DNA from: Penicillus capitatus
Taxonomy: Eukaryota; Plantae; Chlorophyta
DNA: 64,000 bases
Reading direction: 5' to 3'
Assembly: GCA_965649825.1 (NCBI GenBank)
Contig: OZ287696.1
Location: 124,001-188,000, forward strand
The translations under genes were made by a program, and so were the position numbers. The notes beneath the pieces are model-generated. The model did not search any database and was not told the DNA's origin. It saw only the letters and a list, made by a program, of their open reading frames with translations. Below, piece by piece: positions 364 to 55,131 of the stretch (its first letter is position 1; every line of letters begins with the position of its first letter).

Positions 364-934
364 CTAAGCAAGATTCAAGGCCGGAGAATGGTCGGCCGGG
401 TCCTCCACGTCTGGCGCATCGTCGACCGGGTCCTCCACGTCTGGCGCATCGTCGGCCGGGTCCTCCACGTCTGGCGCATCGTCGGCCGGGTCCTCCACGT
501 CTGGCGCATCGTCGACCGGGTCCTCCACGTCTGCATCGTCGGCCGGGTCCTCAACGTCTGCATCGTCGGCCGGGTCCTCAACGTCTGCATCGTCGGCCGG
601 GTCCTCAACGTCTGCATCGTCGGCCGGGTCCTCGACGTCTGGTGCATCGTCGGCCGGGTCCTCAACGTCTGGTGCATCGTCGGCCGGGTCCTCAACGTCT
701 GGTGCATCGTCGGCCGGGTCCTCCTCGTCGATAGCGTCTGGTGTATCGTCAGGTTCGCTCGGCTCCTCCTGTAACAATTCCTTGCGTGGGGTTTCGAGGA
801 TATCTTGCATGGCTACACATGGGTACGATATAGACAAACACAACGGAAGTGTGCGTCTTACGTCGAGCTGAGACGTGGAACAGAGCAAAAGCAGCGAAGA
901 CCAAAAAGATAACCAACTTCTGCCCGCGAGCCAT
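364..934 (-). CDS. Small secreted acidic tandem-repeat protein (173 aa, 2 exons: 934-862, 812-364)
   Basis: ATG at 934 gives signal-peptide-like MARGQKLVIFLVFAAFALFHVSAR. A 49-nt GT-AG intron (861-813) joins in frame to PMQDILETPRKELLQEE..., then (EDPADD[AP/A]DV)n and a TAG stop. TATAAA on the minus strand at 1051-1056. Confidence 0.75.
391..725. repeat. Coding minisatellite, ~11.5 units of 30/27 bp
   Basis: Unit GAGGACCCGGCCGACGATGCACCAGACGTT (minus strand) plus a 27-bp variant lacking CCA. Order along the protein: 3x30, 4x27, 4x30, then a partial unit. Confidence 0.95.
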
Positions 935-1050
935 GACAACTGCTTTTCTTCGAAAAACAAGACAAGGACTTGCAAAAGCGCAGAGATCTTCGAAAACAAG
1001 ATAGGCTACAAAAACGCAAGAAAGTGTTCGAGGCAGAAAACAACCTCGAA

Positions 1051-1056
1051 TTTATA
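1051..1056 (-). promoter_or_regulatory. Candidate TATA box of the acidic-repeat gene
   Basis: TATAAA ~117 nt upstream of the ATG at 934. Confidence 0.45.
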
Positions 1057-4000
1057 CGCCTGAAACGCGAAGCAACACGTGGTCTTCGCTGCCATGTAGC
1101 TGCAAGACGACACTTGTCAGGGAGCTTCGCTGATCCAAATCATCGGTCTGTTCGCGGATTCTGCGGCCAATGTCGCATTTCGTTCCACCCAGCGAAAATT
1201 TCTGTGGTCGATGAGCGAAGCGTTTCGGGCAAAGGTCGCATCTCGTTGTATCTGATCGGCACCTGGTCGATTTTTCGGTCGAGTCGCTTCCTATCACATG
1301 TCGCACGGGTCATGTCACCACGTGGCAGCACTTCGGGTGTCTCCGCCAACCGATTTTGCGTTCGAGGTCTTCACAAGGCACGACGCGATGAAGCATTCAG
1401 CTTACTAAGCGAAAGCGGCAGCAGCAGTTGCAGTCCATGTGTCTGTTTTGTTGTTCAGCGGCCTCGTGTGCTCGCTCTCGGCAAACCTTTGTTGACTTCA
1501 TCCTCGTGACTAAATTGTCTGAGCAGTCGACCAACGCGTGCTTACCGCAACACAGCTGCACGACGAAAGGTCGCTCGGGAAACTCCGTGGACACTAAGAA
1601 AGCCATGCGTGTTCCATTCCCAGCCACTTTAATGGCTCAGACGGGTTTGCTGCTCCTCTCAGAGAACCGTACCTGAAAGACAAGCGTTCTCGCTGCAACG
1701 ACGGGCATGTCGTCTTCGTCGCGCTCTGGCACTCGTCGTCGGCCTCGATTTCTCCCACCTAGCAACCGCAGACGCAGACGTAACGTGCCTTGTTAGGACA
1801 TTAACTTCTGTGGTTGTCGAGGCACGTTTTCAAACCTGTAGGGCGACGTGTAAGACCGCGGCCATCTTTGTGGTCCGTTGTCTACTGCCGTTTGAGGGCG
1901 TTTCGCCCGAGCATGTCGCCCAGCAGCATCTCGATCAAGATTATTTGTTCGCGTCCATGTGAACACCGGATGTTGTGTTTAAAGATCTGCGATTTGCGAG
2001 GTGACTCTTCTCACGATATTACTGACACATTTTTGCATCGACAGACGAATCTACGCGTCGTCGACTGCAAAACGTTTCGTTTTCGGCTAACAGCTGTTCG
2101 CGTCTTGCTCTGTCGCTCTGAAAGCTATCTGCAGTCGATGCTGATACCGAAAACTTAGCTGCGAAGCAGATGAAAGTGGACAAAACGTGCCACCGTTACA
2201 ACCAGCGAACGCAAGACTCGGTGAGGATTTTAAGTACTGGATGGGCCAAGAAGTATCTAGATCCAGTAGAAAGGATATGAATCTCCACATATGATTCAGA
2301 TGATTGTAATAAATCTGCTGACTACGAGATGCATCCGAACCAAAACAACACCGATCGGTGTGACAAGTACTATCCCTTGCCCATCTCAAGGTGCATGCAC
2401 CATCTGTCATGCGAGATGCAGGTAAGGTTAACAACGACACTTGGTCACACATTTCATTTCGATGTCGACGTATTTTGTTACATAAGGCGCTGGAGGACGC
2501 CTGGTCATGAGATGCATTGACTGGTTTGTCGGCAGCTGAGCATGTACAAGGTCTGCAACACGTTTAGAGGGAATACCCACTCAAAAGGAGGATGCGAATT
2601 GCAGACATCTGTTGTCGCATGTGGCTTCAATGATCTGAGCAATCATCTTGTTGTTCATTCTGATAAAGATGGTCTTACAGCTTCTGAAGTCCTGCTTCAA
2701 TGGCTTTGTTGACAGCCATGACAATGAGCTGTTGTTCTGTCGACGACATGAAACCATGCAGCATGACAGCGACCCGTTTGTAGCAGGGGTAATGCATCCC
2801 CTTACCAATTGCTTAAATTGTCAAATGACGTCGACGTACTTGTTCCCGACGTATTCGACCTACATACAAGAAAGTAAAAGATGTGAAGAGTGGATACAAA
2901 ACGATCAACATGAGTGATGTCCCTTTGCCGCGATTCTGCAGTGTATTCGTTCGAGGAGTTGAAGGCTGTCTGCGTGGCGACGGAACGGTCAGTTTTTTAT
3001 TCTTCGCTCAACAAAGGACATCTGTCCTTCACAAAATGCTCGAGTCGACTATCACATAATCGTACAAGACATGCTGGGCAGTTTCACGGACGTTCGTCGG
3101 AATAAAGCCGTATGCGACAAACGTGTGCAGAGTGTGCTGTACCTTACCCTTCTCTTGAAGATAGCGTCCTGACATCTCGCCAAACATAGAGGTGTCGTGC
3201 GTCTTCGGGTTAGGATGCCTAGAAGTTGCTGTTCGAGGGGAGAACTTTGGAAGAACGGTGTTACTCGAGGTTTTCCATAACGCCTTACCTTTTGAACGAT
3301 AAACGCTTCACATTGAAAGCCACATTTTCGCTACGCTTAAGGTGGTGCGAGTCGACGAAGACGGACAAGGATTACAAAACTCCAAATCTGCCTGGCTCGA
3401 TCATTGCCTCTCTGAAAGTCTGTGACGAAGGGCAAGAACATGTCAGCGTACGAAATGCACATGAGCGGATAAGAGTTTGCAAAGAGGCTCGGTAACAGCG
3501 CATGTATCTAATGAAAAGATCCGGTGAAGGACGTGTCTTTAGATGATGTGCTCTTTCAGTTTCCATCGCGCGACGATCGCCGAAGCGAACGATTCGTGGC
3601 TTCTTGTAAATCGACGAAGCGCGCAGTGGACTATTACGACTGCAAAACAGAGAAACGCGACGAGCTCAACACTATAACTGCTTTTGCGTCAGTGTTGAAA
3701 TCTTTTACGTCTTTTTGTGAACTGCCGCGTGTTTGAGGAACGTAAGGAATTCGTTGTCATGCGAAATGATATGTTACAAAGCTCCAGAGTGGCTGTACTT
3801 TACTCTGAACCCGTCTAGGAGAGGACGCGCAGCATACTTACCCGCTAGGTGAAGCTTAAGCTTGGAACCGGTTCTCGATGATACCTGCAATTTCAGGATA
3901 AGAAGCATCACCGTGACGAGGCCGCGGACACGCTAACGTAAAACATGACACATGATGGAGAACGTTTTCCGTGGATGCTTCAATAGAGAGCATGCCGATC

Positions 4001-4351
4001 CCGCAGGCAGTCGGCATTTCTCGAAGCGTTGGAGAAATCAAAGAAATGGCGGAATCGGTTACAGAAGTAAGGAGAAGTTTTAGTGCTGCTTATCGATACA
4101 GACTCATGCTCACAGTGCAAGACGTACACAGATGCACACACGGATGTCATGCTGAACGAAACAGTAATAAACACTTTTCTTGGAACTTGATGCTTAGAAC
4201 GTTGCAAGAACACTTGCTGTTCAGTGAATCAAGTAATGGAAAAAAAGGATGTTCTCCTAGACGATAGGAGCTGTTCAAGGCACATGCGAATGACAAACGT
4301 GCAGTACGAAAGAAAAACAGGTGGCGATCTCGTGCTCTGACCGACTGGCTT

Positions 4352-4967
4352 TCAAGGTCCAACAGTAACATTGGCGACGGCACTGGCACTCGCAACAGCA
4401 TTTTCCGAACTTCTTCGTAGGTCGCCTGTCGAAGACATGAAATGCAGTATGATTGTCAGAGAAGCAACTTACAGTTGACAACTGTTCGATCTAGGACCCA
4501 TATGATGCTCAGGTCGCGGGGACACACGTAACAGATGGCTCGAGGGAATCTCAGACAGCTCCGATTAACACACAGGTCTGGGATGCTTGACACCCGTGCG
4601 ATGCTCTCCTGATCGGCAACTCCTATGAAAAGCATTCGGCGAAGATAGACTCGGCCGTGCGACGTCGCAAGTAACGTTTTCAGAGACGCGTGTCTTCGTC
4701 AGCCGGGCAGCGAAAAACACACTCTATTTGCGACTCCGCGGCTCGAGTTGAGTGCTCGCTCTCCGCGGCGACAGAGATAACGTGGACTAAGGATTTGGTT
4801 CGCTCACCTGTGGCAGTCGCATTTGTCGGCGTCTGGGACTGAGCAGGCTGCGGCTGCGGAGATTGTTCGGTCTGTGCGACGACACTTCCCTCCACGCGTA
4901 TCTCTTGTGCAGTGGCCACCGACGCCAGACAAACAAGAAAGACAAACGCCAAGGCACTCTTCATCAT
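4352..4967 (-). CDS. Small secreted Cys-rich protein, family A copy 1 (127 aa; exons 4967-4808, 4622-4473, 4425-4352)
   Basis: Signal peptide MMKSALAFVFLVCLASVATA, a Q/P/T-rich linker, then SIPDLCVNRSCLRFPRAICYVCPRDLSIIWVLDRTVVNCDL. GT-AG introns (185 and 47 nt) lie at the same positions and phases as in the paralog at 10474-11058. TATAAA at 5034-5039. Confidence 0.8.
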
Positions 4968-5033
4968 TACGAACGCGACGAAGGGACTAAGAGAGACAGA
5001 GGCGAACAAGGCTTCGAGAAAGATGGAGAGTCG

Positions 5034-5039
5034 TTTATA
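5034..5039 (-). promoter_or_regulatory. Candidate TATA box
   Basis: TATAAA ~67 nt upstream of the ATG; matched by a TATA box at a similar position in the paralog. Confidence 0.55.
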
Positions 5040-5578
5040 AAGACGCGGGTTGCCGTGGGTAGAAGCGGCACACGTCGACTTGTCCCCGAAGAGGGAGTTA
5101 ATATGGGCTGTACTATTGCATGGTGACGTGTCTGCGATGTTGAACTCATGGTCGTCAGCTTCGACGCGCCGACCGATTTGAATCAGATTAGAAGAGGAAA
5201 GGAAAAGCCGCGCACGGCACAGAGCAGGTAATCCGCGGACCATTACTCAAGAATCGCGTAAAGTTTACTCATTGTTGCACTGGTCTAAGGCTGACGTGTC
5301 AACTGTCCTCTGCCTATGCGACGCGCAAGGACAAATGCAGATATCGTTTTTCAGGTAGCGGACCATAGCAACTGACTGCCATTCACACAACGCTTGTTTC
5401 AAACAGGCTGTCACTGAGGCATGATGTGCAGACGGATATCGTCGCATGGTTACTGAAAAAGTTAACCTTCACGCTCGTACACCATTCGTTTTCGTCAAAA
5501 CCGATTTGATGCGTTTTGTGCGAGCGAAGGTTGGCAGGAGTGCACAGCGCGTCACGGAAGAGACGTTTCGCTAGTTTT

Positions 5579-8500
5579 CCTTACCTGCAGATATCTCTCT
5601 GGCTTTGTTCAGTTGATTTGGAGAAGTACCATTTCATTGTGGCAGAAGAACCCATCATTAACTTTAGTGCTCGGCCGGTGTCAACGAATCGGCGCAATAC
5701 TTCGGCGAAAAGGGTGATCGCGAATTTGCCTTTGCGTAAATCTTTGCGTTTCTAAAGTCTGCTTTCCATGAGGAAAGATCTCCGATCTCATGCGCTCGTT
5801 TTTTTCTAGAGGGGGTGATTAATAGACAGGTGCGATATGTTGGAGGTGCCCTTCCGCAATGACAGATTCTGCTGCACTCTCCCAACAGCCTTAGCCTTTA
5901 ACGAGGCTGCCCGATCGGTTTCACTCCTTAAATACTCAACAACTTAGTGGGTGTGCCAGAGGCGCATGACCTTATCATCTGCTTGTCTGCTCGTGTAATC
6001 TCTTTCTTTGGGTATTGCGAGGTCTAGCTTTCGAACACGACGCTGCTGGCAGTTCGTCCGACCAGATAGCCAGCGCATTCTCTACCTCGACCGTCTGCGA
6101 CAGTAAAAACACTACCTACCTGACAGAGATGATTGCTCTCGGCACTGTGACAAAGAGACTGCCTTCTTTTTTGTTTGACACAGAGACAACGGTATCTACG
6201 AATCCACTTTGTACTTTTCGCTGCACTTGCGGCTATTCAATGCAGTCTGTGCGTGCTAAACACCACCACAACAGCTCCTCTAGTACACTTCAGAGTTATC
6301 AAAACTGAAACAGAGATTGTTCTGGAGCAACCTCGAATTCCAGCATCCAGGCATCGGAACTTAGAGTCTTGTTGCTGCAACAGATACGAGTTCTTCCTTA
6401 TCGACGATCTGGACTTGGACATCGGGATGGAGTGGATAGCGACATCTTCTCATCCCACATCCGCCACTCGATGCTGACCCACTCCAAGGTGTGCGAGCGT
6501 ACGGATGACAGATCCAGCGCAGACAACTTCAGAAAGGCCAAGAAACGCGATAGGTCAAAGAGACGCACTTGGACTAAACATCGAATTAAAAAACGAAGAA
6601 AGAGAACTAAGCAGGCAGTTCAAAAACAAACACAGAGTTCAAAAAGGTGCCGAGATTGTCGATTGTGTAAAAAAATCCAGATCCCCCTTCTTCTCTCCTG
6701 GCCACTTCAAGTCTCGCCCGTCCCTCCTCGAGGACCTCTGCCTCCTCGTGCGTCTCAGTGTTGCTGGCCACTGTCGTGTCCACTAGAATTCGCATCTTCT
6801 GTGGCATTGGAACGCATCTACAAAGCGCAGTGAGAACAATCTGAGATTTTGTTGAGGTCACGACATTACCTTTTTAGCCTGTCTCGCGTCAGTCCGCTCC
6901 GTTTCATTCTGTTCCAGGGTGTCTGGCGAGATCTTTCTCTTGGAAACGGATGCCGCAATCCGTTTCGATGTTCAACTTGCGATTCTGGTGCGGCGTCTGG
7001 ACCTTCTGCCGGAATCGACGTCCATGGAAGCTTCGACTCTCCTTTCGACTGCAGAAGGTCCCGCTCCAGAGCCCAAAATCTGTGTCGTACGTCCGTGGGG
7101 GTCTGGTGTTGGGCACTGACGGCGACGCGGATCTTCTGGTGTGTCGTACATTCTGCCACCCTCGTCGGCCTTCGCCATCTCGAACTCCATCAGCTCCTCG
7201 AACTGCATCCAGCGTGCCTGCTTCTTGAGCACCATGTCTTCGAGCGGCTGTATGCGTTTTTCACGCTCCTGTAAGTCCGCAGCACGCCTAGACAGAGACC
7301 CAAACAGTCAATGGCACATCAAAAACAGCAGATCCGAATACCTCTCCAGTTTCTCCGATGATCTGTGATGTGTCTCGAGGAGGTCGGCCTTTCTGCACAA
7401 GCACACAGTCTGAGCGTCAAACAATCAAAAACAGTACTCACTCTCTGTCCACTGTTGCATTCCTTCCGTGCGATTTCCTCCAGTTCTGCGCCCGTCGCAC
7501 GGATGACGCGAGCAGTCTCGGCCTCGGTGGCTTCCTTGCTTGCCGCCAGTTCTGTCCTCCGGGTGCCGATGTCTTCTTCGAGGACGAGGAGGAAGTGTTT
7601 CCTCCAATCGGCCTCGGCTCTTTGCACCTCGAGGGGATCGGTGCGTCGAAGGACCCCTCGTTAGAAACCAATTTCTCCTCGCGCCCATCGAGTACGGCGC
7701 GCCTGCAGACACGTCGCTGTCAAGATTTGCCAGCGAGTGCTAAGAGGGCTTACCTTTCCCAGATCCCGCGTTCCTTCTGCAGCAGCGAGGATCCGAGGGC
7801 GCGGATACCCTCTTCTCCTGCATCCAGCTCCTTCTCTTGTCCGTCGCGCAACGCGACGAACTCCGCCTTCTCCTTCGCTAGCCGTTCTTTCCCGGATGCG
7901 AGGTGTCTCTCCCTGTACGCACAGAACCATGACAGGTTATTCGAGGGCATGAACGAATGTACGTCCTGCTCAGGTGATAGGCCTTTTCGGCCAAAGCGTC
8001 GTTGTCCAAGTCGAGTTCTATCTCCGCCTCCTTCAGAGCTCGCTCCCACGCGTCGAGTCTGTTTTTGAACCTAGAGACACCGAATCGCATCCAGCGTTTT
8101 TGAAAGGGCAACGGCGAATACACTTTCGAAGGCTCTCTCGATAGCCCAAGGCGTCGTCGACGTTGCGCTGTTCCTGGGCGGATGCGCGTCCGTCCGGCGC
8201 TGCAGCAAGTGCCCGTCCTGCTTGTGCACGTTCATCGCTTTGCAGTCGACCGTCTTCCATTTTAAAAAACAGAAAACAACAACGCTTCGCAAACAGTTCG
8301 TCGTAAGCGAGAACGCGAGAACTCGAGAATGCGATTCGAGGCTGCGGTTATCGAAGATGACGAGACACGCGGCACGTTCGCGGTTCCGCGCGGCTTGGAA
8401 CCTTCTCGCTGTCCGAAAGAGGCACGTGCCCGTGTAACCGTGTCTATCTCCACAAACAATGGAATCCGCGGCAGCCACTGTTAGTGTTCTCTGCACGTCA

Positions 8501-9600
8501 GATGAAGACTTTCGGTCGGAACAGCATGACAACGGTGCTTACAAGAACGTCTTGTGCACGCTTGCCTCTCGAACGTTAAAAAACTGAAGTGCGAGTTCTG
8601 ACCCCTCTGCAAAATCGTCATCTACAAACGAACGAATTGGTGTAAGGCGAGTTCTGTGTGCATAACAGTATGAACGCCTTCGGGATGTTGAACACAACAG
8701 GCTTTTCAAAGAGAATGGCGGTTCGGGACACATTCCTCAATGAGATCCATGAAAAAAGAACTCTCTGCCTGTTGCAGTATACTAGAGTGATAAGCATTTC
8801 GAAAAAATCTCTCCATAGCGTGGCTGCTCCTCTCGGGGACAGGATCTCCATTTCCCATGACAGATATGGAAATGTCGTCCCGTGTATCGCATTGTTCAAA
8901 CATTTCAAACTTCGTTGGCCATCATTCGGCCTGCTTCTGTGCACATCTTTTCCATAAACGGTTCCCACGAGACCGGTAGCTACAATGCCGGCGACTGTAA
9001 TGACTACTACCATGATTACCATTGACAACACCGGCGGACAAGGAAGACGAAGAATGATGTTGTTCAACCTCCTCTGGAGATGAACGGTCAAGGGATGAGC
9101 AAGTTCTCCTCTGTTGAACGGAAGACATTCTTCCCACACGGGTCACACTTTCGATCATGTGGGTTATTTGGGAATCATTGAACAGGGCTTGATACAATTT
9201 GAGTGTGTACTTGCACTTGCGTTGACAGACAAAGAGTATCTCCTCATTCCTTTGTGCGCACGGTGCACGAGAGCTGAACGTCTCACACATTGGCTGCACC
9301 GTGCTCTGAGAGGTTTTAATCACCTTCGAGAGAAAGGCGACAGTTGTACACGGTCACGTCGTTGCTTTCTTCGATGGTGGATTTTGGACATCTAAGTTTG
9401 CAAGAAGGAGGGTTCTGGCCGGAGGAATGGAAGGCGGTCAAGAGAGAGGGTTCGCAGTGGCCGGTTGATCCAGAAAGATCAACTGTGGTCATGGTCGATG
9501 TCAAGCTATCGAACTTGGAGGCCACTTGTCGTGACGTCTCATCTTTCCATCGAGACATATGAATGCTGTTCATGATGTGACTGGCATTGAGAATGCTGCT
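5579..9600 (+). repeat. Left arm of a ~4-kb inverted segmental duplication (partner 18279-22234)
   Basis: The reverse complement aligns throughout, e.g. ORFs 7358..8068 vs 19771..20475 and 9344..9562 vs 18304..18534. Identity roughly 85-90% by eye. Confidence 0.92.
6859..8260 (-). pseudogene. Multi-exon coiled-coil protein gene, disrupted copy A
   Basis: Spliceable MEDGRLQSDERAQ...RESLRK|RFKNRLDAWERALKEAEIELDLD|RERHLASGKERL... Carries a 1-nt deletion near 7660 and a premature TGA near 6972 relative to copy B. Confidence 0.55.
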
Positions 9601-11133: not shown

Positions 11134-11139
11134 TTTATA
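11134..11139 (-). promoter_or_regulatory. Candidate TATA box
   Basis: TATAAA ~76 nt upstream of the ATG at 11058. Confidence 0.55.
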
Positions 11140-11629
11140 AGGGTCCCTATGAGGCTTACGCGAAAAATCGACAATCGCCAAACTGCATGACAACATGCCA
11201 GCTGTTCCCAACTTCGACCAGAAGTTCATGCATACGTGGAAGTGCCGCGGATCTTCCAGGTAGTCAGCTGCCTCGTTGCAAGCGCATTTGAGTCGGATCC
11301 TTCTGAAAACGATGGTCTTGTAACAAACAGCTCCGGAAAATACAATTCCTTAAACGACGTGTGTGCTCGACGCACATTCACCTGCGTCAACAGCGGGTCG
11401 TGCATCGTAGACAAGTGCCTTCAATAACATCCTCTCTACAGAAGAGCAGAGAAAGATGGCGAGCGCATTTTGTTTCTCTGCTCAAATCAAGAGTCGCTTT
11501 ACGAAAAACCAGTCTGAAGTTCACTAGATGCATGGACACATGGGTTCGACACAGACAATGCACATTCTCCAAAATCATTGGCTAAATCGGGGATCCTTGC
11601 TATTGCGAGAAGAACGACAGCAGTGACTC

Positions 11630-25111: not shown

Positions 25112-25192
25112 CGAAGCCATTCTGTTCCTCGTCGCCCATTCTGCCTCTTACTTCTTTCAGCGACCTTCACTTGCAGCAAGAACATTATCAAC

Positions 25193-27613: not shown

Positions 27614-30600
27614 GACGACATTTCTTGTTCAAAGTGACTAATGATGACGCACTTCTACGCACAATAGACTCCGAATCAACGGTGTGAACTCCTCATGGTA
27701 CGGAACCATGATGTCACGTTGGTTACGAGGGATCGGAAAGATGACAGTCCGATGCGACAGACAGAACTGATGGGATGTTGCGATCGAAGCATTAAATAGA
27801 GACTCATGATGAATTAGGTGTCAAACGTTTGGCTTTTTAAAACATTCACTACGCAGCACCCATGGCCGACGCGAAGCCCGCTTGTCCCAATGACATGGTT
27901 TCGGAGCGAGGTTCTCGAACGAGAACCTGTCTTGTTTATTCGGAGTATACTCGAGACATTCACGAGTGGTTGTTTGAATCGCTGGAAATCACTACGACGG
28001 TAGGACGTGAACGAGACCGAGCGTTGTTGGACAGCCTCGAACCCCAGTCGACAGCCTCGAAACTTGTTTTGCCTCAGCTAAAAGCCGTCCGACGCCTGGA
28101 CGAAAAGGCATGTCGCGAAGAGCTTGGAGGTGAAACGGCGTCCGAAGAAACAGCAGTAGACGATCTTCGTTGGCAAGTATTGAATAAACGTTTGGCAGCG
28201 CTGTTGCCGAAAGATGACCTCGTGGCGCCCGAGGACCAGCTCCGCAGCATGAAACGTGATGTAGCGAAGAAAAACTTACTCGTCTACGTGGACCGTTTTG
28301 TTCGGGAAGCCCGGTCCTTCGTCGCCCAGCAAAAAGTATCGATGGAGAAGGCCGTCCGGATCCTCTATCATCAAATGCCTGAAGAGATACGTCGGGCATT
28401 GATCCACACCGGGAAAGCCGGACTGAGTTTGACACAAATAGAGACGCTGGTGCGAAACAAGCTCGAGGTTCTGGCCATGACGGACGCTGGAGAATACTCG
28501 TATCGACAACTGGTCGAATACCTCGATGAAGCTACTTGTCGACAAAAGGCTAGTGGCAAACCGGAGACCGCCAGATTGGAACTTCCACTTGCGGGTGGAG
28601 AAACACCGCAGCCATCAAGCGGACAACGCCGACGGTTGGACATCAATAACCCGAACCATGTGATGATCGCATGGAAACGTTTGATGTGGGTACCCCGCTT
28701 TCGACGAGAGGCGCAGAAATATCTCGCTTCGAATTCCTTTGACGCGAGGCCGGCCACCCAACTCAGGGCTTTACAAACCGAAACCGAAGATATTGACGAT
28801 CCTTTGGAGCTTGAACTGGCCGAAGAAGACGGGGAGGTTCTTTCCAAACCAGGGCTGTATACCATGTACAAGGGTTACCCTCTGGGACCAAGATCAGTGG
28901 TTTGGTGGATACTGGCGCCACTGCATGTTTCATTCAAGAGGCCACTGTAAAAGCATTGGGAATCCAGCAGAGAGTAACACAATGTGGAAAGCTACACGTT
29001 TCGCTGGGAAATGGAAGTGCCTCTCCAATTCTGGGACTCATAAACATCGAAGCCCATATAGATGACCATCCATATGAGATGGAAGCGTTTGTGATTGGAG
29101 GCAAAGGCCCGCCGCTCATCCTAAGATTCCCCTTCTTCGCTACAAATCAACTTCTCATTGATTGCCAAGAAAAGAGAATCTGGCGCAGAAATGGCGAAGA
29201 AATAACATGCACGCAGGCGCAGCTAAAGGTCCTTAACCCAACTGATGTGACACATCTCCTCGAAGAAATGCAAAGACTCCAAACTGAGCTCGATGACGTC
29301 AAAGGGCAAAAAAAACATCCAAGGAGCATCACTGAATCCAGCCCAGTGGTGTTGAGCTTTGAGTTGTTTGAGACTCCTTTATACCTCCCGTTTCTACGAA
29401 ACTGCTATTTGGTACTCCCTTTCAACAGATCGTGGGTGCTGGGTCCAGGGAATGCCGAAAGCTCATCCTTCCCGTTAAGTTCGTCATGGGAAGTTTAGGG
29501 TCCATCACGGACGCGCTTAATTGCCCAGGAGTCAGGTTTTCTCCACAAAGCAATAAATGTAGGGTCTGGGGAATGCTAGAGAATCGAGGTCGGATGCCAC
29601 AACATTTGACGCCTAGGATGCCACTGTGCATCATCCAAACCAATGTGACGCATGTACTGGTTCCAGACAGAGGGCAAATTCCGTTGACAGAAAGAGGTAT
29701 TCCGTTGCCGCTGAGAAGCATTGTTGCGTATGGAGAAGATTTGCAGAGTATATTGCGAGAATTCCACGACCTGACCAGTGGCAATCTTGGGAAATGTGTC
29801 GATCATGTGGTGACAGATATCCCATTTCAGCATCGTCTGACAAGACAACAATCATCGCCGTCCATATCACCCAGCGAAGAGTCGTTAGTTCTGGAAGAAA
29901 TCAACAAGTTAGTAGAGTTGGGGTGGTCAGGGAGACGTCCCAAGAGCCATATTTGATTCCGGCGTTCTACATTCCGAAAAAAACTGGAGACGTGCGATTG
30001 GTGCTCGATATTCGGAAGCTGAACTCGTGTGTAGAAGCTCAGCCCTTCCTGGCAGTGAATAGAGAGCATACGATCGCTGGGGTGCGCCCGTATGTGGTCG
30101 GGTCAACAATCGATTTACAAAACGCGTATTTCCAAGTAGAGCTCTCCCCTAAGCTGCATCATTACTTTGGAGTGTGTTTGCGACGGAAATTCTATGTCTA
30201 CGAACGACTCCCCTTCGGATACGTCAATTCACCTAGCGAATTCCTAAGAGCATTGAGACCTGCGATTGCAGAAATGGATGAAGCAGTGCAGAGCCAAGTG
30301 GTGGTTTACACGGACGATATTCTTTTGCTCTCACAATCAGTGCCAGAACATCTCCTAATCTACGCCAAGTACTCCAGATTCTGAAAAAAGGGGATGGCGA
30401 GTGCGACCGGATAAGTTGGCGTGCAAGTGCCTCAGCGATAGCACGCCTTCAAAAGCTACAGCCTCCCAGAACGCAACAGAATGGAGAGCGATCAAGGGCT
30501 GGTTCCGGCAACTTGTTTGATTTGTGATGAACGGCAGAGTGGTTCAAGGAGCGCTACGGAAGGCGGAAGAATCGGGAAGGGTGGAGGATTGACAGGCATG

Positions 30601-31046
30601 TGTGAGTGGATTGAAACAACACACAGTGGTATGTACACACGCAAAAGAAGCCACGGACTTTGGCATCGCAGTGGATTCCTGGGAAGTGGCTGGGGTGCAG
30701 TGCTATTGCAAGAGAAGTCTTCCGGTTTGTGGCCGCAAGCATTAAAGCATCAAATCTCGAATCACTTGGAAATGGAGGCAGTGGTTAAAGCTCTTCGCAA
30801 GTTTCGGCCATGGATCTTTGGAGCGAGATTGACAGTGTTCAGTGACAACTCTTCGGTGGCCAGCATCGCAAATGCAGACAATCGAAGTCCCTTCATCCGA
30901 CGACGGCTTCAGCTCAGAGAGGGCTGGAATGGTGGTTTCGAGAGAATGGAGCCACTATACGAATTCTGTCAGATCGCGCAAGCTATTTTAGCTCGCCGAT
31001 CTTCAGCGCGTGGACAGAGGAATGGGGCGCAGAGAGTATACTGGAA
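27614..31046 (+). mobile_element. Truncated Ty3/Gypsy LTR retrotransposon (gag, protease, RT, RNase H, integrase remnant)
   Basis: gag-like ORF 27862-28950; protease VDTGATACFI (~28902); RT IPKKTGDVRLVLDIRKLN, IDLQNAYFQV, LPFGYVNSP, YTDD; RNase H GWGAVLLQ...LEMEAVVKAL...VFSDN; integrase core piece GATIRILSDRASYFSSPIF (~30945-31040). Multiple frameshifts. Confidence 0.9.
27862..28950 (+). CDS. Gag-like protein of the Ty3/Gypsy element (362 aa)
   Basis: Long ORF immediately upstream of the DTG protease, with capsid-like YVDRFVREAR. No CCHC knuckle seen. Confidence 0.6.
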   Translation: MADAKPACPNDMVSERGSRTRTCLVYSEYTRDIHEWLFESLEITTTVGRERDRALLDSLEPQSTASKLVLPQLKAVRRLDEKACREELGGETASEETAVDDLRWQVLNKRLAALLPKDDLVAPEDQLRSMKRDVAKKNLLVYVDRFVREARSFVAQQKVSMEKAVRILYHQMPEEIRRALIHTGKAGLSLTQIETLVRNKLEVLAMTDAGEYSYRQLVEYLDEATCRQKASGKPETARLELPLAGGETPQPSSGQRRRLDINNPNHVMIAWKRLMWVPRFRREAQKYLASNSFDARPATQLRALQTETEDIDDPLELELAEEDGEVLSKPGLYTMYKGYPLGPRSVVWWILAPLHVSFKRPL

Positions 31047-34000
31047 ATACTGATCAACCAGGGAGGCTGCTTTATTAATCTAAGTGCTCGTTACTGTCGT
31101 AGATTCGAGCCAGTCTCTTACCGGTGCATGTAGTGCGGCTGCGTGGGTCATCACAAAGCAGTCGACTGCCCGAATCTGCCTCTCTGTTCTTTCTGCAAGC
31201 AGGCGCATCTTTCCTCCGATTGCCCATCCCGCAAGGCTTCTGAACAGCCGTCTGCTCAATCAGTCCCATTAGTGCGGAACCCAGTAAGCAGCTGGGACTC
31301 AGACGTCGAAGTGGAAGATGCTGCCATGGCAGTAGACGCAGTCCCCCTCCCTGTCCAGCAATCGTCTTCGTCAACGCATCATGAACAACAGTAAACATTC
31401 GTCCTCTTCCAGTGATCTGCACTCTGTTTTTCCCCACTCCAGTCACCCCGACTCTTGCCTTAATATAGATAGGTCATCAAATATTGTCATTGACCAAATT
31501 AACCTTGCCTCAAGAAACCTATCTCTTCCAGCCCTAGAGCTCTGGCTGGAAAAGGAATCACCGGACATAGTTGCAGTTTGCGAACCGCCTTTCTATTTGC
31601 GCCAGTGTCCATTCAAATCGTTCAAACATCGCTGGATTCGATTTCCTGGCAGTCCCAGCACACAGTGTGGCTTTTTCGTGCACGAAGATATCCGTTACGA
31701 AATCTTGCCGCTTCCAAATAACCCTGATAGAGTCACGGCCATCGTTGTCCCTTCTGCTCAGGGAGATCTGGCGATCATCTCTTTTTATGTTCGACATACT
31801 TCCGCTGCTGGCCTTGAAGACCTTCACTCAGCCTACGACGCATGCCGAACAAAATGCTCAAGAGTGATTCTGTGTGGAGATGCCAATGGGCATTCACCTC
31901 TCTGGGGCCCCGAAGCCCCAAACGCTGTTGGCGAGAAGGTCGAAGAACTTGTGCTCACCAGAGGACTCCATATCATCAACAATGTCTCTGGCCCCCGTCC
32001 TTTAGAGACGCCCATGGTAATCCTCACTGGCTTGACTTGACCCTCACGAACTCTACGGCCGCATCTCTTGTCTCGAAATGGAGTGTCCTAGATGACGCGA
32101 TCCCAGTGTTCGATCATTCGCTCATCCGCACAGTCATCTCCGCCGATAAGATTCCGAGAGAGGCCCGAAAAATCTATAAGTGGAATGATGTCGACTGGGA
32201 CGAATTCAATCGAGAACTCTTTCGCAAGCTCATCTATCACAACTGCTTCGATCCAATTCAAGACGTCCAAGCCGTCGAACTTCGAATAAAAGATCTCACT
32301 GCAGCCATCCAATCTACGATGGAGTCTAGAGTCAGGACTAGTCGTTCTTCGGGCGTCCGGAAAGCTTGGTTCATTTCTTCCGTCAAACATAAATGGAAAA
32401 GTTACAGAAATTCCAGAAACCGTCTGAGAAAAGCCCGGAATCGCCATCAGTCATGTCAATCTAAGCATTCGGCCGACCTCCTTCACCATGCGGCTCAAAA
32501 CACGAAAACTGCAAGATCCAAGTTCAAAGAAGAAGTGAAGAGTGCTAAACAAGTGTCCTTTCAAAACTTTTGCAGAAACACCCATACGGGTGGTGATATG
32601 TGGAGCCGCTTTAAAAGGATCTCTGGTGGCCCGAAACTAGCCGACGTCCCCGCCTTGACAACTGAAGACGGAGTGACAAGCTCGACCTCGGCAAAAGCAG
32701 ACCTCCTGTTCAAGCGCTTTTTTCCAAAATTAACAGCCCCCGATGATGACTCACTTCTTCGTCAGGCAACAACGTGGAAAGAAGTCCATGATTGGGCTCC
32801 GTGCAGAGCTGCGGAACAGATCAGTTTTGATGATCTGGAAGACCTGGTTGCTTCGACCCGCCATGGGGCTGCAGGCTTAGATAAGATCCCCACTCTCTGC
32901 ATCCAGAAAACCTTTTACACTATCGGTGACATACTGCTTGACATCTTCAACTTTTGCCTCACTAATGCTTACTTCCCATCTTGCTGGCGTCAGTCGCTCG
33001 TTGTTCCTGTACCTAAAGGCGGATCCGATCCCACCAAACTAAGCAGTTGGAGGCCCATTTTACTCCTCTGCTGTATGGGGAAGCTTCTTGAGCGGATCAT
33101 CCAAAAGCAGCTAACATGCCATCTTGATAACAACGTTTCTATCTGCTCAGAACAACATGGTTTTCGCTCCGGGAGAAGTACGCTGACTGCTCTTATACAA
33201 GCAAATGAAGATATTTTGAAATCCTTCAACGCAAGAGACCAGACTATTGCCCTCAGCCTGGACATATCCGCAGCTTTCGACAGCGTGCCGCACGCTATCC
33301 TCTTATGGCGCTCTACCAAATGAAGATTCCGGGAAACCTGCTTGGTATGATCCGGTGTTTTCTTACCAACCGGTCAGCTTCGTTGAACCTCGATTCCAAC
33401 TCATTCTCGTGCATTTCAGAACTCGGGGTCCCCAGGGTAGTCAAGTCTCACCGGTTCTCTTTCTCTGCTTCATCAACGACATTGCTCACTGTATCGCTGG
33501 CCCGTCCAAGCTCTTCATTTTAGCTGACGATTGCCTATTATATTCCAAACTTGGACGCCGCCAAGAGCTGCTCCAATCCTTCCAAGACAACATCGACAGA
33601 ATAATGAACTGGGGCACAGCGAATCTCATGTCGTTTAATGCCCAAAAAAGCCACTTGGTGCGATTCCGTAGGTTGAGAAAGGCTGTTCCAGTGGAAATCC
33701 GTCTGAACGCTGAGATACTCTCTGAAGAGCCGATGTTCCGTTACTTAGGCCTTAACATGGACGCCAAGTTCTACAGATTTTCCGTACGACACTTTCGTTC
33801 CGCCGTTTCAAAAACCCTTGCTGAACGACGGTGCCCGCACGCGTAACAACGAACTATGCAGCCTTCTGGCTCTCAGTCTGGAGGTCCTGACACCGCCCCC
33901 GACCCAGTGCGCACGGCGGTTGCTCAGGCCGCAAACACGGTCCGATACCGGCGCCGACCTGCGCCGGTGGCCGGAGGTTCTGGAGAATATGAGCAAGGCT

Positions 34001-36416
34001 GAGCTCATACTCGTGAACACCGCAGTCCGGGCGTGCTCCACACAGGACGCTGCTTCCATGGACTCCGCACAGCTTATTTTGAGAATCCGAGCTTACTTGT
34101 CAGCCCAAGAAAGGCGAGACGCCGTGCAGCTCCGACTCGTCCGCCACCACGAGAACGCCAGAGACTCGCTCCTACTCGCCCCAGAAGGTCCCCTCTATGA
34201 CCCGCACGTTAAGTCTTCCTGTCTCTCACAGATCTGCCGGTACAAAGAAACAGTTACCCCGCCAGATCTCCTGGATGCACTTGCCCAAGACCTCGCCACT
34301 ACGCAGTCTCATCTGGAATGCGCCACTGGATCCGTTTCACCCGAAAACCGAGAAACGCTCCTGGGAATCGCCAATCGACTCGAGGAGATAGGAAACTGCC
34401 TAAGATTTCACAAGTCCATGGTCTCGTTTGCACCGACACCCCCAGCTCCAATGGCCCATGTTTCACCACCTTCTGCGGCTGGCACCGCTCGAGCAGACAC
34501 CCGCTCGTACCGCGACGCCGCCCGTCAGTCCTTGCCCTCAGAGCAGCCCCAGACCACGACCCTCGCCCAGCGTTAACGGACCACCCAGGCACGAGAGATC
34601 CGGAGGCAAACCAATGCGATCAAGGCCCAGATCCGCTGTGATGGACGCAGCTTCCAGCTCTGCCCAGTAACCCTGAAAAGAGAGCGTCCGTCCTTTCGCT
34701 AGCTCGGCATCAGTCTGGAACGAACTCTGAAGCTCAAGAACCTGAAGGAATATGTCGAAGACATCAGGACAGACCAAGGTGGAAGATATTACGTGCAGAT
34801 TCGGGAAGATCTGATTCAGAAATTCGAGCAGGTTCTCGACCGCTGCCTGGAATGCGCCGGTGCCAGATGGGACCTGGAGCTGGACAACATCGGAACCTTC
34901 ACAGTAAACAATCCGTACGTCTCGTCTACCAAAGACAAGATCCCGATAGTCATCGGCAGTGTTGACATAGACATTGACCCTGAAGCAGCCATCGAAGCTA
35001 TCGCAACACAGAATGCATCCCGATGGAACCTCTCAGCTACCGACCTTCAAGAGTCGCACTTCGCGGCCCCGCACCGGTTGAATCGCAGGAAACGAGATCC
35101 CTCAGGACAGCCTGTTCCCGAATGGCTGCCAAGCAAGAACCTGAAAGTCTTCATCTCGAAGACACTTCACGAGGAGCTTCTTGGAGAAAACAAGGCCCCG
35201 TTTGCTACCCTGGACTACATGGTCCTCCCGATACGCCAGTTCGTTCGGTTTCCCAGTGTTGCCCGCGGAAACACCTGATTGATCACTTCATCTATCTCTT
35301 CCCTGTTCAGCCATCCTAGTCTCTGAGTGTCGTTGATCCTTGTTCATGTACTGAACAGACGCGCCTCTGATGTTTCACTTTCAAAAGGGGCTGTAAGAAA
35401 GACCAATTTATTATTATTATGGACGCCAAGTTGAATTATGCGAGTCACGTTCAGGATGTCAAGAAAAGATGTGTCGACCGTCTGGCATCTATCAGACGCC
35501 TCAGCCATTCCAACTGGGTCGCTTCCCCTCACGTTACTCAGATTCTTGTCAAGTCATGTGTTGTCCCGTCCGCTCTCTATGTTGCAGAAGTGTGGAGCAA
35601 TACTGGTCTGGCTGTAGCTAAAAAGATTCAAGCAATAGAACGTATCTACAGATTGGGAGCTCTCATGATCACCGGCTGCTTACGTACAACAGCTACCCAG
35701 TCTCTTTTCGTGCTGGCAGGCCTGCGCCCACCAGCCTATGAAATCTCTCTTCGGCTTATAATGCTACAACCCAGCCTCGAAGCTTTGGACATCCGTATGC
35801 ATCATAATCGTTCCCCTGTGGAAGAAACATACCCAACCCCTCTGTCATCTCTGCACAATCTCGTCCAAGCCATAAATAGTGACATTCCAGTTTCTGCATT
35901 GAACAAGAACTCGATGCGATGTGCAGCAGTGTCGCATCTCGAAGATAAAGAACTGAAGTCCTGGCAGCAAGGAACCACAGGCCAGCAGCTAAGACTAACG
36001 AACTAGTCTCCAGTTATCAGTCGACGTCGTAAATGGATCAAGCCCTTTTGCCGTGAAGAATTCACTTCCCTCTGCAGATTCTTGTCTGGCCATTTCCCAT
36101 GCAAGGTCTTCCTAAACCGTATCCAAAACTCCGAGCACGAAGAGGTAGAACTCGGGTGCCGTCTCTGTCAAGAAACCATCGAATCTCGTGATCATTTGCT
36201 CGATTGCCCTAGCCTGACAAGTTTACGACAACAATTAAACGAAGAACATATTTGGACTTGGGACAACATTCTGAAGAAACCGAGTTCGAGAAGCACCTTA
36301 GCTAAATATTGCCAAGAAGTTTTGTCTCGTTTATCATCCCGACTTTCATTTCCGCTCAGCATTCATGGGGCATGTCATGCGCGGATCCCATGTAAAAGCA
36401 CCATTTGTATATATCC
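31047..36416 (+). mobile_element. 5'-truncated non-LTR retrotransposon (LINE; APE-RT-CCHC), frameshifted and interrupted by an insertion
   Basis: ORF1 tail with knuckles CxxCGCVGHHKAVDC and CSFCKQAHLSSDC; APE (QINL, DIVAVCEP, CGDANGHSPLWG); RT (WRPILLLCCMGKLLER, QHGFRSGRST, LDISAAFDSVPH, LADD); post-RT ITGCLRTTATQSL; C-terminal CRLCQETIESRDHLLDC. TGTAA at 36391 precedes a short TA tail. Confidence 0.92.
33771..35418 (+). mobile_element. Non-autonomous ORF1-only retroposon (1648 bp) inserted in the LINE RT region
   Basis: 14-bp TSD ATGGACGCCAAGTT at 33757-33770 and 35419-35432; (TTA)n tail; TGTAA at 35392-35396. The ORF1-like frame (SYRDAA, RLNRRK...WLPSKNLKV, LPIRQFVRFP) has two in-frame stops and ends where the knuckles would begin. 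Confidence 0.85.
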
Positions 36417-36431
36417 TCGGAGAACAGGACC

Positions 36432-37482
36432 GCCGATGTTATCGCCGAGACGAGGATTGATGAGCACCATTTGGTTGCCATCCTTCTCGATCTTCTCGAC
36501 CCAACCCTGAAAACGTCACATCGTCTCACTTATTTGCGCACACGAGACTGGCCATTTCTTTGAGATCCGCCACAACGGCGCGCATCACGATGTTCTTTGG
36601 AGCTATGCGTAAATGTTAAAAGCAAAGGTCGTCGACTTCGGATGCCCGAGCCTCGTCGAACTGCACAAATCCCTTCGTGTCACCCCTAGTCCATTACTTC
36701 CATGATCCTTCTCACGGTTACAAGTGAGAGCGGCGATCCCTGAGATCTTCCATGTGGGCCAAGGACGGCGAGAAGACGTGTGGGTACTTGGAAAACGCTT
36801 TCGCCCATGGACTGCTGTACGCAGACCTTGACAGTGGCGCTATCCTTCGTCAGCGAACGGGCCACTGTCCACACCATCTCTAGCAACGTCCCCACTCGAT
36901 AGACATCCATTTCGGAATTCGTCTCCTGAATCTTCAGACTGTACTTATAGAGACACTGTTACTCCGATCTCCTCAGGGAGTCGTCTACTGAAAGGATAGT
37001 CGCGATGGGCTGTCGGCTGAAGCGGCAAGGACACCGCGTGTATGTGTCTCTAGGAATGGCATGAAAAGGCATCGATCCCTCTACACGGTGAAGACACTTA
37101 AGAACCATTCAAGGTCCCCTTCCCTCGACTGAAGTAGGGAATCGTTTCTGCCTTCATGACAATGACAGATTTGGGATCGAAATGAACAAAGCGAGGATGT
37201 ATCCGTCGAGGTTGCAGATAGATGATTCGACAGTCCTGTAGCGAGTGCCAATCATAGCTACGATCTCGAGAAGTTTGGCGTTTGGCAGGCACCGAGTGCT
37301 TTCCCCGCTGTTCGCTCTTGAGAGTGGATCACGTCTCGTTTGTCAAAACCTTGTCGTTCTATATCACATTGACAATCAGAAGAACCAGTGGCTGACGCAC
37401 GCATACGAGGTAATGGTGAGTTGCTGAATAAAGGCCTCACAGCTTTTGCTGCTCCCGCAATCTTCCTGGAAGTCAAGTGCAT
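36432..37482 (-). pseudogene. DUF1995 gene, second copy, 3'-truncated
   Basis: MDVYRVGTLLEMV...VKVCVQQSMGE; TAG at 36686 (MEVMD*) where family members have Trp; cut at the LINE junction. Confidence 0.65.
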
Positions 37483-38762
37483 CGTCGATCGACGCTGTGA
37501 CTGCTCTTCCTCGTTTCCGTGCCTGCTCGAGAGACAGGGTCACTCATTGGATAGCTGCGTGAATTCCGGCTAGTCAGCATCGCAGTCACTCTGTTCGCCG
37601 CTGCTCAGGTAACTTCGAGGCGAATCTGGCAGCGCAGCTATGCAGTATCCGAGCAGAAGTCTGAGAAGGGAGTGAATGCTCCTGGCCCTTTCGAAGGCAG
37701 GCAGAAGTGGAGAACCCCTTCCCATTCTTCGTGCGAGCGCCATTCGCTTGCCGCTGTCTACATCGATTCCAGTTTTTCTGTCCACCAAACTTCGCCAAAA
37801 TCCGAGCCCAAGTGCCAGACACGAGACGCACTCTCGGCGGCACGCAGATCGAGGCGAACATGACTTGGAAGCGCGACCGTCTTGCGTCGCTGATTCGGAG
37901 TCCAACGACGCGGAAGGACGCGTGTTTCGTGGCGTCTGGGAGGAAGCCGAAGACGGCACGCGTCTGCTGCACAGGTGCTGTTCTGTCCAGTCCTCGACGT
38001 ATCAGCGACCTTCCAGCGAAGCCCCTTAACCGTTATCCCAATAGCCAATCACCGACCCGAGCCTCTGTCCCTGGGCAACTATTTCGAATGCGGTCTTCGA
38101 GATGGGCGCCTCGTCGCGAGGACGCAGAAAAACTCGAAGGCATCGGGTTGGCGAGGCAAATGCGGATCGCCTAGGCGCGAACGGCGCACCACCCCCTTCC
38201 GACAACCGTTCAACCGAACCGTCAGAAACCATCGCCTTGGAGAAACCGCGTGCGGAGACTGTGGCGTTGGAGTGTCTGGTCGGTCAATTGTTCTCCGAGC
38301 GAGACAGCACTAAGCGTCAAAACACGTCAGGCAGTTCCCGCTGCGACCGCCTCGTCTGGTTTTCGGCGTCGTCCCCGGCGACCAGAGACGCTCAGAGAGA
38401 TGGAGGTTAGAAGGAGACGTGCGATGCCTGACGCTCATCACATGGCTTTGGCTCAAGTCTGTGCAGCATTTTAGGCGACGGGTGAGCTTCATGCAGCCGA
38501 CCGACGGCGCTTGCTGATCGCTTGCCTAGACAGGGCCAGGCGGTTGCGAGTTCAGCTCTGAAGTTCCATGCGTGGCGCTTCGCGTAAGAGACGCCTGCAC
38601 CTGAGAGCCGCTGTTGGTGTACCGATTTGGATTCTGGTATAACCTTCGCGTGCTATTCTGGCGGCAAAGGCACTATATAAACGAAGCCATTCTGTTCCTC
38701 GGCACCCATTCTGCCTCTTACTTCTTTCAGCGATCTTCACTTGCAGCAAGAACATTATCAAC

Positions 38763-39259
38763 ATGGCCCGCGGAACCTCCTTCGACGCTATCCTGTCCCT
38801 TGGATTGGCTCTGCTTCTCTTCGTGGCGATGACATGTACAAGTCCTCAGTTATCGCAAACCTGTCTAAACGTTTGACTGTGGACAGCGGCTCGTAATGTC
38901 CTGCAAATTCCTCCGGCTTCTCCTGTGCCCGAGGAAGTGGAAGAACCGGAGGTGGAAGAAGAAGGAGAAAGTAGGTTCCAGACTCCTTTGTAGCATGTGA
39001 CGAGTGTGGATGTTCTGCAGTGTGTTTGGCGTTTACGGACTGTTCTCAATATTTCGGTTTCCTGGGAATGTCAGGCTGCGCGTTAGGAACAGGCGTTTCA
39101 TGCAGACTTCTTATGGGAGATGCAATCGAAGAAACACTTGAACGTGTTCTCGGAGATGAGTGTGAGATCGGAATCGTGCCTTACTGCTACACGGTAGCCA
39201 CAAATGGCACCGAAATTCCGGAACCTAAGTGCTGTAAGCCATCCAACACTTCTGACTGA
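38763..39259 (+). CDS. Small secreted 8-Cys protein, copy 2 (131 aa; exons 38763-38835, 38887-38970, 39021-39259)
   Basis: Same signal exon as copy 1. Exon 2 reads SARNVLQIPPASPVPEEVEEPEVEEEGEM; exon 3 is identical to copy 1 except GMSGCALGTG. Confidence 0.78.
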
Positions 39260-55112: not shown

Positions 55113-55131
55113 GTCTGGCTGTAAAGACGGC

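Follow-up and report, generated by a model that had tools for sequence, protein, structure and literature searches.

Results

Five spliced genes in the window encode putative small secreted proteins

The window analyzed here is a 64,000-nucleotide (nt) stretch of Penicillus capitatus contig OZ287696.1 (positions 124,001 to 188,000). It carries five small spliced genes, g1 to g5, whose products are predicted to be secreted. They belong to three orphan families, which form a lineage-specific, positionally conserved and structurally unstable cluster with accelerated evolution of the mature peptides. A preliminary description of the window had placed five spliced genes with signal peptides here, and all five models were rebuilt from the letters in the same places, spliced, translated and compared with five models built in a related genome. 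Three genes lie on the reverse strand: g1 (364–934; exons 862–934 and 364–812, with a phase-1 intron at 813–861; 173 residues), g2 (4352–4967; exons 4808–4967, 4473–4622 and 4352–4425; 127 residues) and g3 (10474–11058; exons 10902–11058, 10536–10691 and 10474–10484; 107 residues). The other two lie on the forward strand: g4 (25193–25671; exons 25193–25265, 25317–25382 and 25433–25671; 125 residues) and g5 (38763–39259; exons 38763–38835, 38887–38970 and 39021–39259; 131 residues).

All five frames are intact from ATG to stop. The nine introns, 47–51 or 185–210 nt in size, all have GT...AG ends and are all in phase 1; the window itself is about 50% G+C and eukaryotic. The preliminary description had put a phase-1 intron after the leader. 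The phase is right throughout, but in g2 and g3 the first intron follows a linker of about 33 residues. Exon 2 of g4 and g5 and exon 2 of g2 and g3 are symmetric (1-1), an arrangement that, with phase-1 introns, permits a cassette to be swapped or lost with the frame kept. The leaders are hydrophobic and end in a small-x-small motif (VSA/RP, ATA/QE, VTA/GP and TSA/RN).

A related genome was reached by a search with an exon (13636–14415) of CCDC39, a conserved gene within the cluster, which matched four proteins. One is the window's own frame fragment, from ERZ25074695, an ENA metagenome assembly in which it sits on a contig of 942,848 bp (the ENA record); another, 85% identical, lies on a 1,387,775-bp contig of ERZ26696514, the sister genome that we call the relative. 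A literature search with these two accessions returned nothing. The relative is diverged from the window by about 15–25%, and intergenic DNA is 72–86% identical between the two.

Each gene has a TATA(A/T)A motif upstream of its ATG. The motif starts 122 nt before the ATG in g1 (TATAAAT, 1050–1056, reverse strand), 72 nt in g2 (TATAAA, 5034–5039, reverse), 81 nt in g3 (TATAAA, 11134–11139, reverse) and 89 nt in both g4 and g5 (TATATAAA, 25104–25111 and 38674–38681, forward). The distances of 67–117 nt reported earlier agree with these when counted from the end of the motif rather than its start (72–122 nt). Promoter sequence is also kept in the relative: TATAAATTCGAGG(T/G)TGTTTTCTGCC around the g1 box in both of its g1 copies, CTTTATAAAGGACAA at g3 and CACTATATAAACGAAGCC at g4. 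As a test against chance, the combination of TATA box, ATG and signal-like leader was scanned for in the window and in Markov-shuffled windows. Shuffled windows gave 0.17 matches each and the real window gave three loci (g1, g2 and g3) under the strict rule, with g4 and g5 picked up only under a relaxed charge rule, and none in 42–64 kb; the combination is about 20–30 times commoner than in shuffled sequence. One possible extra gene, at 52963 on the reverse strand, was rejected: the signal-like start, MRRTLYALAALFLFVVGAAAAQA, belongs to a frame of 28 codons that lacks a splice donor and lies beside a gag-like CCHC frame.

The pattern of insertions and deletions bears on whether these frames are translated. 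All 10 gene copies, five from the window and five from the relative, lack internal stops and share identical splice positions at 20–40% nucleotide divergence. Exon lengths differ between copies by multiples of three in all 11 cases (3, 6 and 6 nt in g2; 6 and 3 nt in g3; 18, 6 and 63 nt in the g4 family; 306 and 180 nt in the g1 family, plus 30 nt separating the window from the ENA record). The corresponding intron differences are 18, 1, 1, 2 and 0 nt, of which 1, 1 and 2 are not multiples of three. That the models are decaying or non-functional frames, conserved merely through a short divergence time, might be argued from the flanking non-coding DNA, which is as conserved as the g2 and g3 exons, from the truncation of g3, and from the lack of homologs beyond the lineage in the searches made. 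We consider this very improbable. Eleven frame-preserving exon differences out of 11, alongside introns that take 1–2-nt indels, have a chance of about (1/3)^11; the Cys framework and the splice sites are invariant; the ratio of nonsynonymous to synonymous divergence (ω) is 0.30–0.44 for g2 and g3; and two g2/g3 lineages have been kept since before the split of the genomes. Thus open frames, frame-preserving exon indels, invariant Cys residues and conserved promoters provide strong indirect evidence for a coding function, and for regarding the genes as real coding units older than the split between the window genome and the relative.

The three families have no detectable homologs

The five genes had been described as belonging to three unassigned families, and Pfam, the PDB, large protein collections and JGI metagenomes indeed yielded no homologs. 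In Pfam-A no family reached the gathering threshold for any of the five. Below threshold, g1 matched Extensin_1 at 24.2 bits against a cutoff of 105, a compositional match, and g3 matched FIT1_2 at 14.9 against 26.1; g2, g4 and g5 had no matches at all. The full g4 protein found nothing among 5.8 billion proteins. The only matches of a g4 HMMER profile among 1.84 billion representatives were the window's own fragment and a 78-residue fragment that is the g4 of the relative, and a g2/g3 profile run against 5.8 billion proteins found only the window's own reading frame. Scans of JGI metagenomes for both Cys families returned pattern matches and no true relatives, and profiles of the g4 and g2/g3 domains had no match at E ≤ 1 among PDB sequences.

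Structure prediction gave a model of moderate confidence for one domain. The AlphaFold model of the g2/g3 domain (predicted local distance difference test score, pLDDT, 75) is a small four-stranded β unit, for which the best Foldseek E-value was 3.7, or noise. The model of the g4 domain (pLDDT 47) was unusable. On present sequence collections, then, the three families appear to be lineage-specific orphans without detectable homologs.

The families are neighbors in both genomes and change in copy number and position

In the relative, the order is HAD-hydrolase, g4, g1b, g2, 5.5 kb of unread sequence, g1a, g3, CCDC39 and MFS, so that the three families are neighbors in both genomes. The five secreted-protein genes of the relative lie on one strand within about 23 kb. 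Its g3 ortholog (locus L002, 6672–7342) is directly upstream of CCDC39, and the true g2 ortholog is at 298–939 of locus L003. Two g1-type genes lie at L002 3297–4045 and L003 4381–4645, and a g4-type gene, seen only by exhaustive HMMER search, at L003 9702–10237. As g2 and g3 each have their own ortholog, the duplication that separated them predates the split.

A further gene lies 9 kb beyond this group on the reverse strand (around L003 19421, within ~18950–19560). Its promoter (CCTATATAAACGA) and signal-peptide exon are of the g4 type and its intron is in phase 1, but the body consists of a Cys-free, acidic (ETSVEPAATAGQQ)-like repeat. The gene resembles a chimera in which a leader exon has been joined to a different mature cassette.

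Copy number differs accordingly between the genomes: the window has one g1 and two g4-type genes, and the relative has two g1 genes, one g4 and the g4-leader chimera. Position differs as well. The 22.5 kb at 18126–40574 of the window, which hold one arm of an inverted repeat (A′), a segment B with g4, retroelements and a second segment B′ with g5, are absent at this site in the relative, where the equivalents of 18.1 kb and 40.6 kb are directly joined. Window positions 1–5246 (g1 and g2) align to L003, and the 2.0–10.25 kb interval (g2 and inverted-repeat arm A) has no counterpart between g1a and g3 in L002. Synteny predicts a g4 copy to the left of the window, and none was found in the adjoining 5.3 kb. 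The cluster had been portrayed as an expanding island of five genes. The independent loci, however, number three: g5 is a recent copy of g4, g2 and g3 form an old duplicate pair, and g2, which has its own ortholog, represents no new expansion.

The g1 family exchanges its acidic repeat array

Exon 1 of g1 (862–934) encodes the signal peptide, and exon 2 (364–812) encodes MQDILETPRKELLQ, a conserved motif at the N-terminus, and then a tandem array of about 11.7 units of 30 nt, (DDAPDVEDPA)n. Mature g1 is 46% D+E and 17% P, with an isoelectric point of about 4 and no Cys. Leader, intron and a 14-residue N-terminal motif (ILExP(R/G)KxLL) are kept among the g1 copies. The body is built of (DDAPDVEDPA)n in the window, and the two copies of the relative have (PEEPEVPEGPDG)n and (NGD)n instead; the acidic repeat unit is thus a different, unrelated one in each of the three copies. 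Between window and ENA record, g1 differs by exactly one unit (30 nt). On inspection, no C-terminal hydrophobic signal for attachment of a glycosylphosphatidylinositol (GPI) anchor was found in g1 (which ends ...VEDPADHSPALNLA), g1a (...GPEGPE) or g1b (...DYYDR). The g1 product is probably an exported, polyanionic and disordered extracellular protein, which may bind cations.

The g2/g3 family evolves rapidly around four invariant Cys residues

In the g2 protein a signal peptide precedes a Q/P/T-rich, mucin-like linker, which leads to a Cys domain and an A/S/V/N tail ending in VTVGP. The domain has five Cys in g2, four of them conserved, and four in g3; these four are invariant in all four members, that is, g2, g3 and their orthologs. 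The g3 protein is cut early (CDL*) by a premature TAA that drops a tail of about 25–30 residues; g2 and the two genes of the relative keep this tail. Sequence 3′ of the g3 stop is still alignable to the lost tail, and the same stop is present in the ENA record, where the g3 exons are identical.

By the Nei-Gojobori method, nonsynonymous divergence (dN) from the respective ortholog is 0.23 for g2 (ω = 0.44) and 0.24 for g3 (ω = 0.30). Two neighboring genes served as rate controls: CCDC39 gave dN of 0.04–0.08 (ω = 0.13–0.28) and MFS gave dN of 0.09–0.12. The dN of g2 and g3 is thus about 3–6 times that of CCDC39. Like g4 and g5, these genes probably encode exported, disulfide-stabilized extracellular proteins.

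Divergence of g4 and g5 is confined to the mature-peptide exons

The most striking case in the cluster is the exon-confined divergence in g4 and g5. Exon 1 of g4 encodes the signal peptide, exon 2 (25317–25382; symmetric 1-1) an acidic variable linker and exon 3 an 8-Cys domain with the spacing C-x5-C-x11-C-x7-C-x19-C-x7-C-x14-CC; all eight Cys align across g4, g5 and the g4 of the relative. Between g4 and its counterpart in the relative, identity is 81% in exon 1, 88–90% in the introns and 80–85% in the 300-nt flanks, but 56% in exon 2 and 60% in exon 3, with a 63-nt insertion. Pooled, non-coding DNA is 83.8% identical and exons 2–3 are 59.3% identical (Fisher p = 4e-15).

The same pattern was found between g4 and its recent duplicate g5, in which 768 of 774 positions are identical (99.2%) over the 300-nt flanks, exon 1 and both introns. 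Exon 2, in contrast, has been replaced (68% identity and an 18-nt indel), and all nine differences in exon 3 fall within 27 nt between Cys2 and Cys4, where they change five residues. Identity is 99.2% outside and 90.2% inside exons 2–3 (p = 4e-12). Nei-Gojobori estimates were dN = 0.48 and ω = 0.65 for g4 against the g4 of the relative, and ω = 0.92 for g4 against g5. Whole-gene ω in the family spans 0.55–0.92, values obtained from few sequences with synonymous sites near saturation or affected by replacement.

It is quite possible, if somewhat short of probable, that this pattern reflects gene conversion or recombination among diverged paralogs rather than positive selection on new mutations. 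The differences between g4 and g5 lie in two tight patches in which several codons are changed at two to three positions, and the surrounding 774 nt differ at only six; the proportion of synonymous differences (pS) in exons is about four times the intron divergence. More paralogs exist, namely the intact, ancestral HAD-linked locus, which must lie elsewhere, and the g4-leader gene of the relative with its other mature part. However, neither the window nor 60 kb of related loci yielded a donor for the variable patches, and conversion would need either a donor with the same intron 2 or a tract that leaves this intron out. Conversion and diversifying selection could also both have acted.

Segmental duplications, retroelements and conserved genes are interleaved with the cluster

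The two g4-type genes sit in direct copies. Block B (22844–27470, or to 27477 with its HAD fragment) contains g4, and block B′ (36414–40426), 13,570 nt downstream and 91–100% identical to B, contains g5. Each ends in a 5′ fragment of a HAD-type gene (27208–27477 and 40157–40426) comprising only the first 90 codons, 86–88% identical to the relative. Since this is the gene that adjoins g4 in the relative, B and B′ are segmental copies of an ancestral g4-HAD segment. The N-terminus of the HAD-type protein looks like an organelle targeting peptide, and the intact gene lies outside the window. Between the blocks, 27841–36006 (forward strand) is retroelement debris with LINE-type (long interspersed nuclear element; Exo_endo_phos and RVT_1) and LTR-type (long terminal repeat; aspartyl protease, RVT_1 and RT_RNaseH) frames. 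Reverse transcriptase occurs there in at least three separate frames, which implies that the elements are fragmented or nested.

An inverted pair is formed by arm A (5561–9570) and its partner A′ (18327–22272), which are 88–94% identical and have no Pfam match. Arm A is mostly without counterpart in the loci of the relative that were examined, apart from an edge at ~9198–9587 that matches L002 15518–15911. About 400 bp are duplicated on both sides of the junction of the 22.5-kb insertion and may be a trace of its origin by insertion or duplication. Segments at the arm and insertion edges (17941–18576 and 9302–9570) copy sequence from 40762–42318 with 76–92% identity. The window is identical to ERZ25074695:ctg340469 over 0–2.5 kb and ~14–29.7 kb, and about 470 differences from this record fall within 2.5–14 kb, mostly in arm A and with a peak at 8500–9000. 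The three arms (A of the window, A of the record and A′) stand about equally far apart (89–92%). The 2.5–14 kb differences may stem from alternative haplotypes or from mis-assembly of a multi-copy element.

Two conserved, syntenic genes occupy the 11307–17444 stretch: CCDC39 (~11.3–15.0 kb, forward strand) and an MFS transporter (15.9–17.4 kb, reverse strand). A placement of the MFS gene inside the inverted arms was rejected, as the gene table puts it at 15.9–17.4 kb. Among solved structures, the best match of the CCDC39 exon was FAP59 of Chlamydomonas (109 bits; human, 78 bits), which may be taken as a taxonomic hint. The preliminary description had confined the secreted-protein genes to a duplication-rich, rearranged left 40 kb; the duplications are real and none of the genes lies in 42–64 kb, but CCDC39 and MFS lie inside this region.

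Pfam scans of stop-to-stop reading frames, on which our account of the window content rests, identified EF-hand, BBS1, mitochondrial-carrier and kinase frames in the right third. Repeats occur in the right part as well, namely a perfect direct repeat of 300 nt (51161–51460 and 55295–55594, 4.1 kb apart) and a 41-nt tandem repeat in three copies (54993–55113), along with a gag-like CCHC zinc-knuckle frame (~51900–52900). The longest open frame in the window, 1,045 codons at 59662–62796 on the forward strand, has no Pfam match. An Rfam search of the whole window gave no match.

Discussion

A probable neighborhood of diverging secreted proteins

The window probably holds part of a lineage-specific neighborhood of small secreted-protein genes with diverging mature parts and turnover of copies and positions, in which clustering is likely to stem from local duplication. 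Three unrelated orphan families stand side by side in both genomes, and every gene has a TATA promoter of its own, a predicted signal peptide at the N-terminus and introns in phase 1. Gene number and position change through segmental duplication and rearrangement next to retroelements. The mature parts diverge much faster than the neighboring genes, in three ways. In g1 the whole acidic array is swapped and copy number varies; in g2 and g3 amino-acid substitution is high around a fixed 4-Cys core; and in g4 and g5 divergence is confined to exons on a fixed 8-Cys scaffold, with promoter, leader and introns kept. We infer that the protein surfaces of g1 to g5 are under diversifying or relaxed selection, as would be expected of recognition or defense proteins in contact with other cells or organisms rather than of housekeeping proteins. 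Wound plugging and mineral interaction, suggested earlier as roles, stand as conjecture.

Several points weigh against this reading. Secretion was called by inspection and a hydrophobicity scan, and the protein-collection searches returned only fragments of the organism's own reading frames. The comparison covers only two genomes, about 100 kb in all, with a gap of 5.5 kb in the cluster of the relative. All ω values are below 1, which falls short of formal evidence for positive selection. In g4, exon pS is about 0.47 against an intron divergence of about 0.10–0.12; an excess of this size is explained at least as well by patchy replacement or gene conversion between paralogs, or by poor alignment, as by selection on point mutations. 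Finally, the g2 and g3 exons are no better kept than the introns (71–80% against 71–89%), which implies weak constraint outside the Cys core, and part of this family may be drifting towards loss, the tail of g3 being already gone.

We also asked whether the three families constitute one co-regulated functional module, such as a cell-coat, recognition or mineral-handling toolkit, whose linkage is held by selection. The families adjoin in both genomes despite heavy rearrangement, and in the relative they share one strand. TATA promoters occur throughout, and the strict TATAWAW motif is otherwise rare here (seven in 64 kb, three of them at the promoters of these genes), all introns are in phase 1, and acidic linkers recur in g1, in exon 2 of g4 and g5 and in the g4-leader chimera. 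Yet the promoters have only the TATA box in common, with no further shared motif, the unrelated conserved genes CCDC39, MFS and HAD are interleaved, and local duplication with a short divergence time explains proximity equally well, as intergenic DNA is still 72–86% identical. We rate a selected module of this kind as unlikely. Most likely, clustering reflects local duplication history and possibly shared regulation rather than a multi-component machine. The proposal that the cluster is an undescribed system goes past the evidence. Conserved proximity is the sole functional tie seen among the three families, and the cluster does not represent a new kind of system.

A bolder reading, which we think quite unlikely, is that the locus is a positionally conserved 'variable surface' locus. 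Its families would be kept together and co-expressed from their TATA promoters, their phase-1 exons would be exchanged as modules, with a common leader exon set before interchangeable cassettes (acidic linker, Cys domain or repeat), and the polymorphic 2.5–14 kb would represent long-lived alternative haplotypes. Modular exchange is suggested by the relative's g4-leader chimera and the replaced exon 2 of g5. If true, such a locus would provide cassette-based variation of secreted proteins for mating, self/non-self recognition or defense.

Short of that, a neighborhood of locally duplicated secreted-protein genes would be of interest for its individual members. The g4 family, if confirmed, would be a clear example, from a free-living or uncultured flagellated eukaryote, of secreted proteins in which the exons for the mature peptide have outpaced the introns by far. 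In g1, a polyanionic repeat array has turned over completely behind a conserved leader. Together with g2 and g3, these genes are candidates for recognition or defense proteins in a lineage without an annotated genome. The approach may also be useful elsewhere, as comparison of two metagenome-assembled contigs can validate spliced orphan genes without RNA, the test being that exon indels stay in frame and intron indels do not.

Comparison with known systems

The two-speed genome concept places secreted-protein genes in repeat-rich compartments of filamentous pathogens (bioRxiv 10.1101/021774; PMC9926174). The window resembles such compartments in having lineage-specific small secreted proteins beside retroelements and segmental duplications, with copy-number differences and accelerated evolution, and the preliminary description had drawn the same parallel in speaking of a diversifying secretome compartment. 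The local part of that claim, fast evolution and copy-number change relative to the sister genome, is borne out. Repeat-rich, rearranged DNA surrounds g4 and g5 locally (the 22.5-kb insertion with LINE and LTR elements), and the association is weaker for g1 to g3, which abut conserved genes at 0.3–3 kb. The likeness is read from only 64 kb and about 60 kb of related loci; ciliary and transporter genes are interleaved, the position of the cluster is kept between both genomes, and a Pfam scan found no effector motif or known effector family. Although the local association of secreted-protein genes with duplications, retroelements and fast evolution fits the filamentous-pathogen concept, we regard a true effector compartment of a host-associated organism as improbable.

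Individual families can also be set beside known proteins. Plant non-specific lipid transfer proteins with the eight-cysteine motif and hydrophobins have the spacings C..C..CC..CXC..C..C and C..CC..C..C..CC..C, respectively. The spacing in g4 differs from both, with a single terminal CC pair and no CXC. Trypanosome EP/GPEET procyclins are polyanionic, Pro-rich repeat proteins. GPA of Emiliania huxleyi is a Glu/Pro/Ala-rich Ca-binding protein (named in PMC6715215). The g1 family resembles both in composition only, with a signal peptide followed by extremely acidic, Pro-rich, Cys-free tandem repeats of variable number; unlike procyclins, g1 is without a GPI-type hydrophobic tail.

The closest parallel to g4 and g5 is found in animals. 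Genes of Conus superfamilies (PMC3862624) and mussel MgCRP-I (PMC4558851) have three exons, with leader and introns kept across species, a hypervariable mature-peptide exon in which point changes and trinucleotide indels accumulate, and a fixed Cys framework. In contrast to these, the organism here is a flagellated protist or alga rather than a venomous or filter-feeding animal, and the mature part of g4 and g5 is larger (about 100 residues) and acidic, with ω of 0.55–0.92 and three or four family members. Exon-over-intron divergence is best known from animal venoms and from immune or reproductive proteins. The g4 and g5 genes share with conotoxins and MgCRP-I the layout of three exons and two introns, the kept signal exon and introns, and a hypervariable mature exon with in-frame indels. 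An invariant Cys framework is likewise found in g4, g5 and the g4 of the relative (8 Cys) and in g2 and g3 (4 Cys). With no kinship in sequence or Cys pattern, the likeness is one of mode of evolution, not homology.

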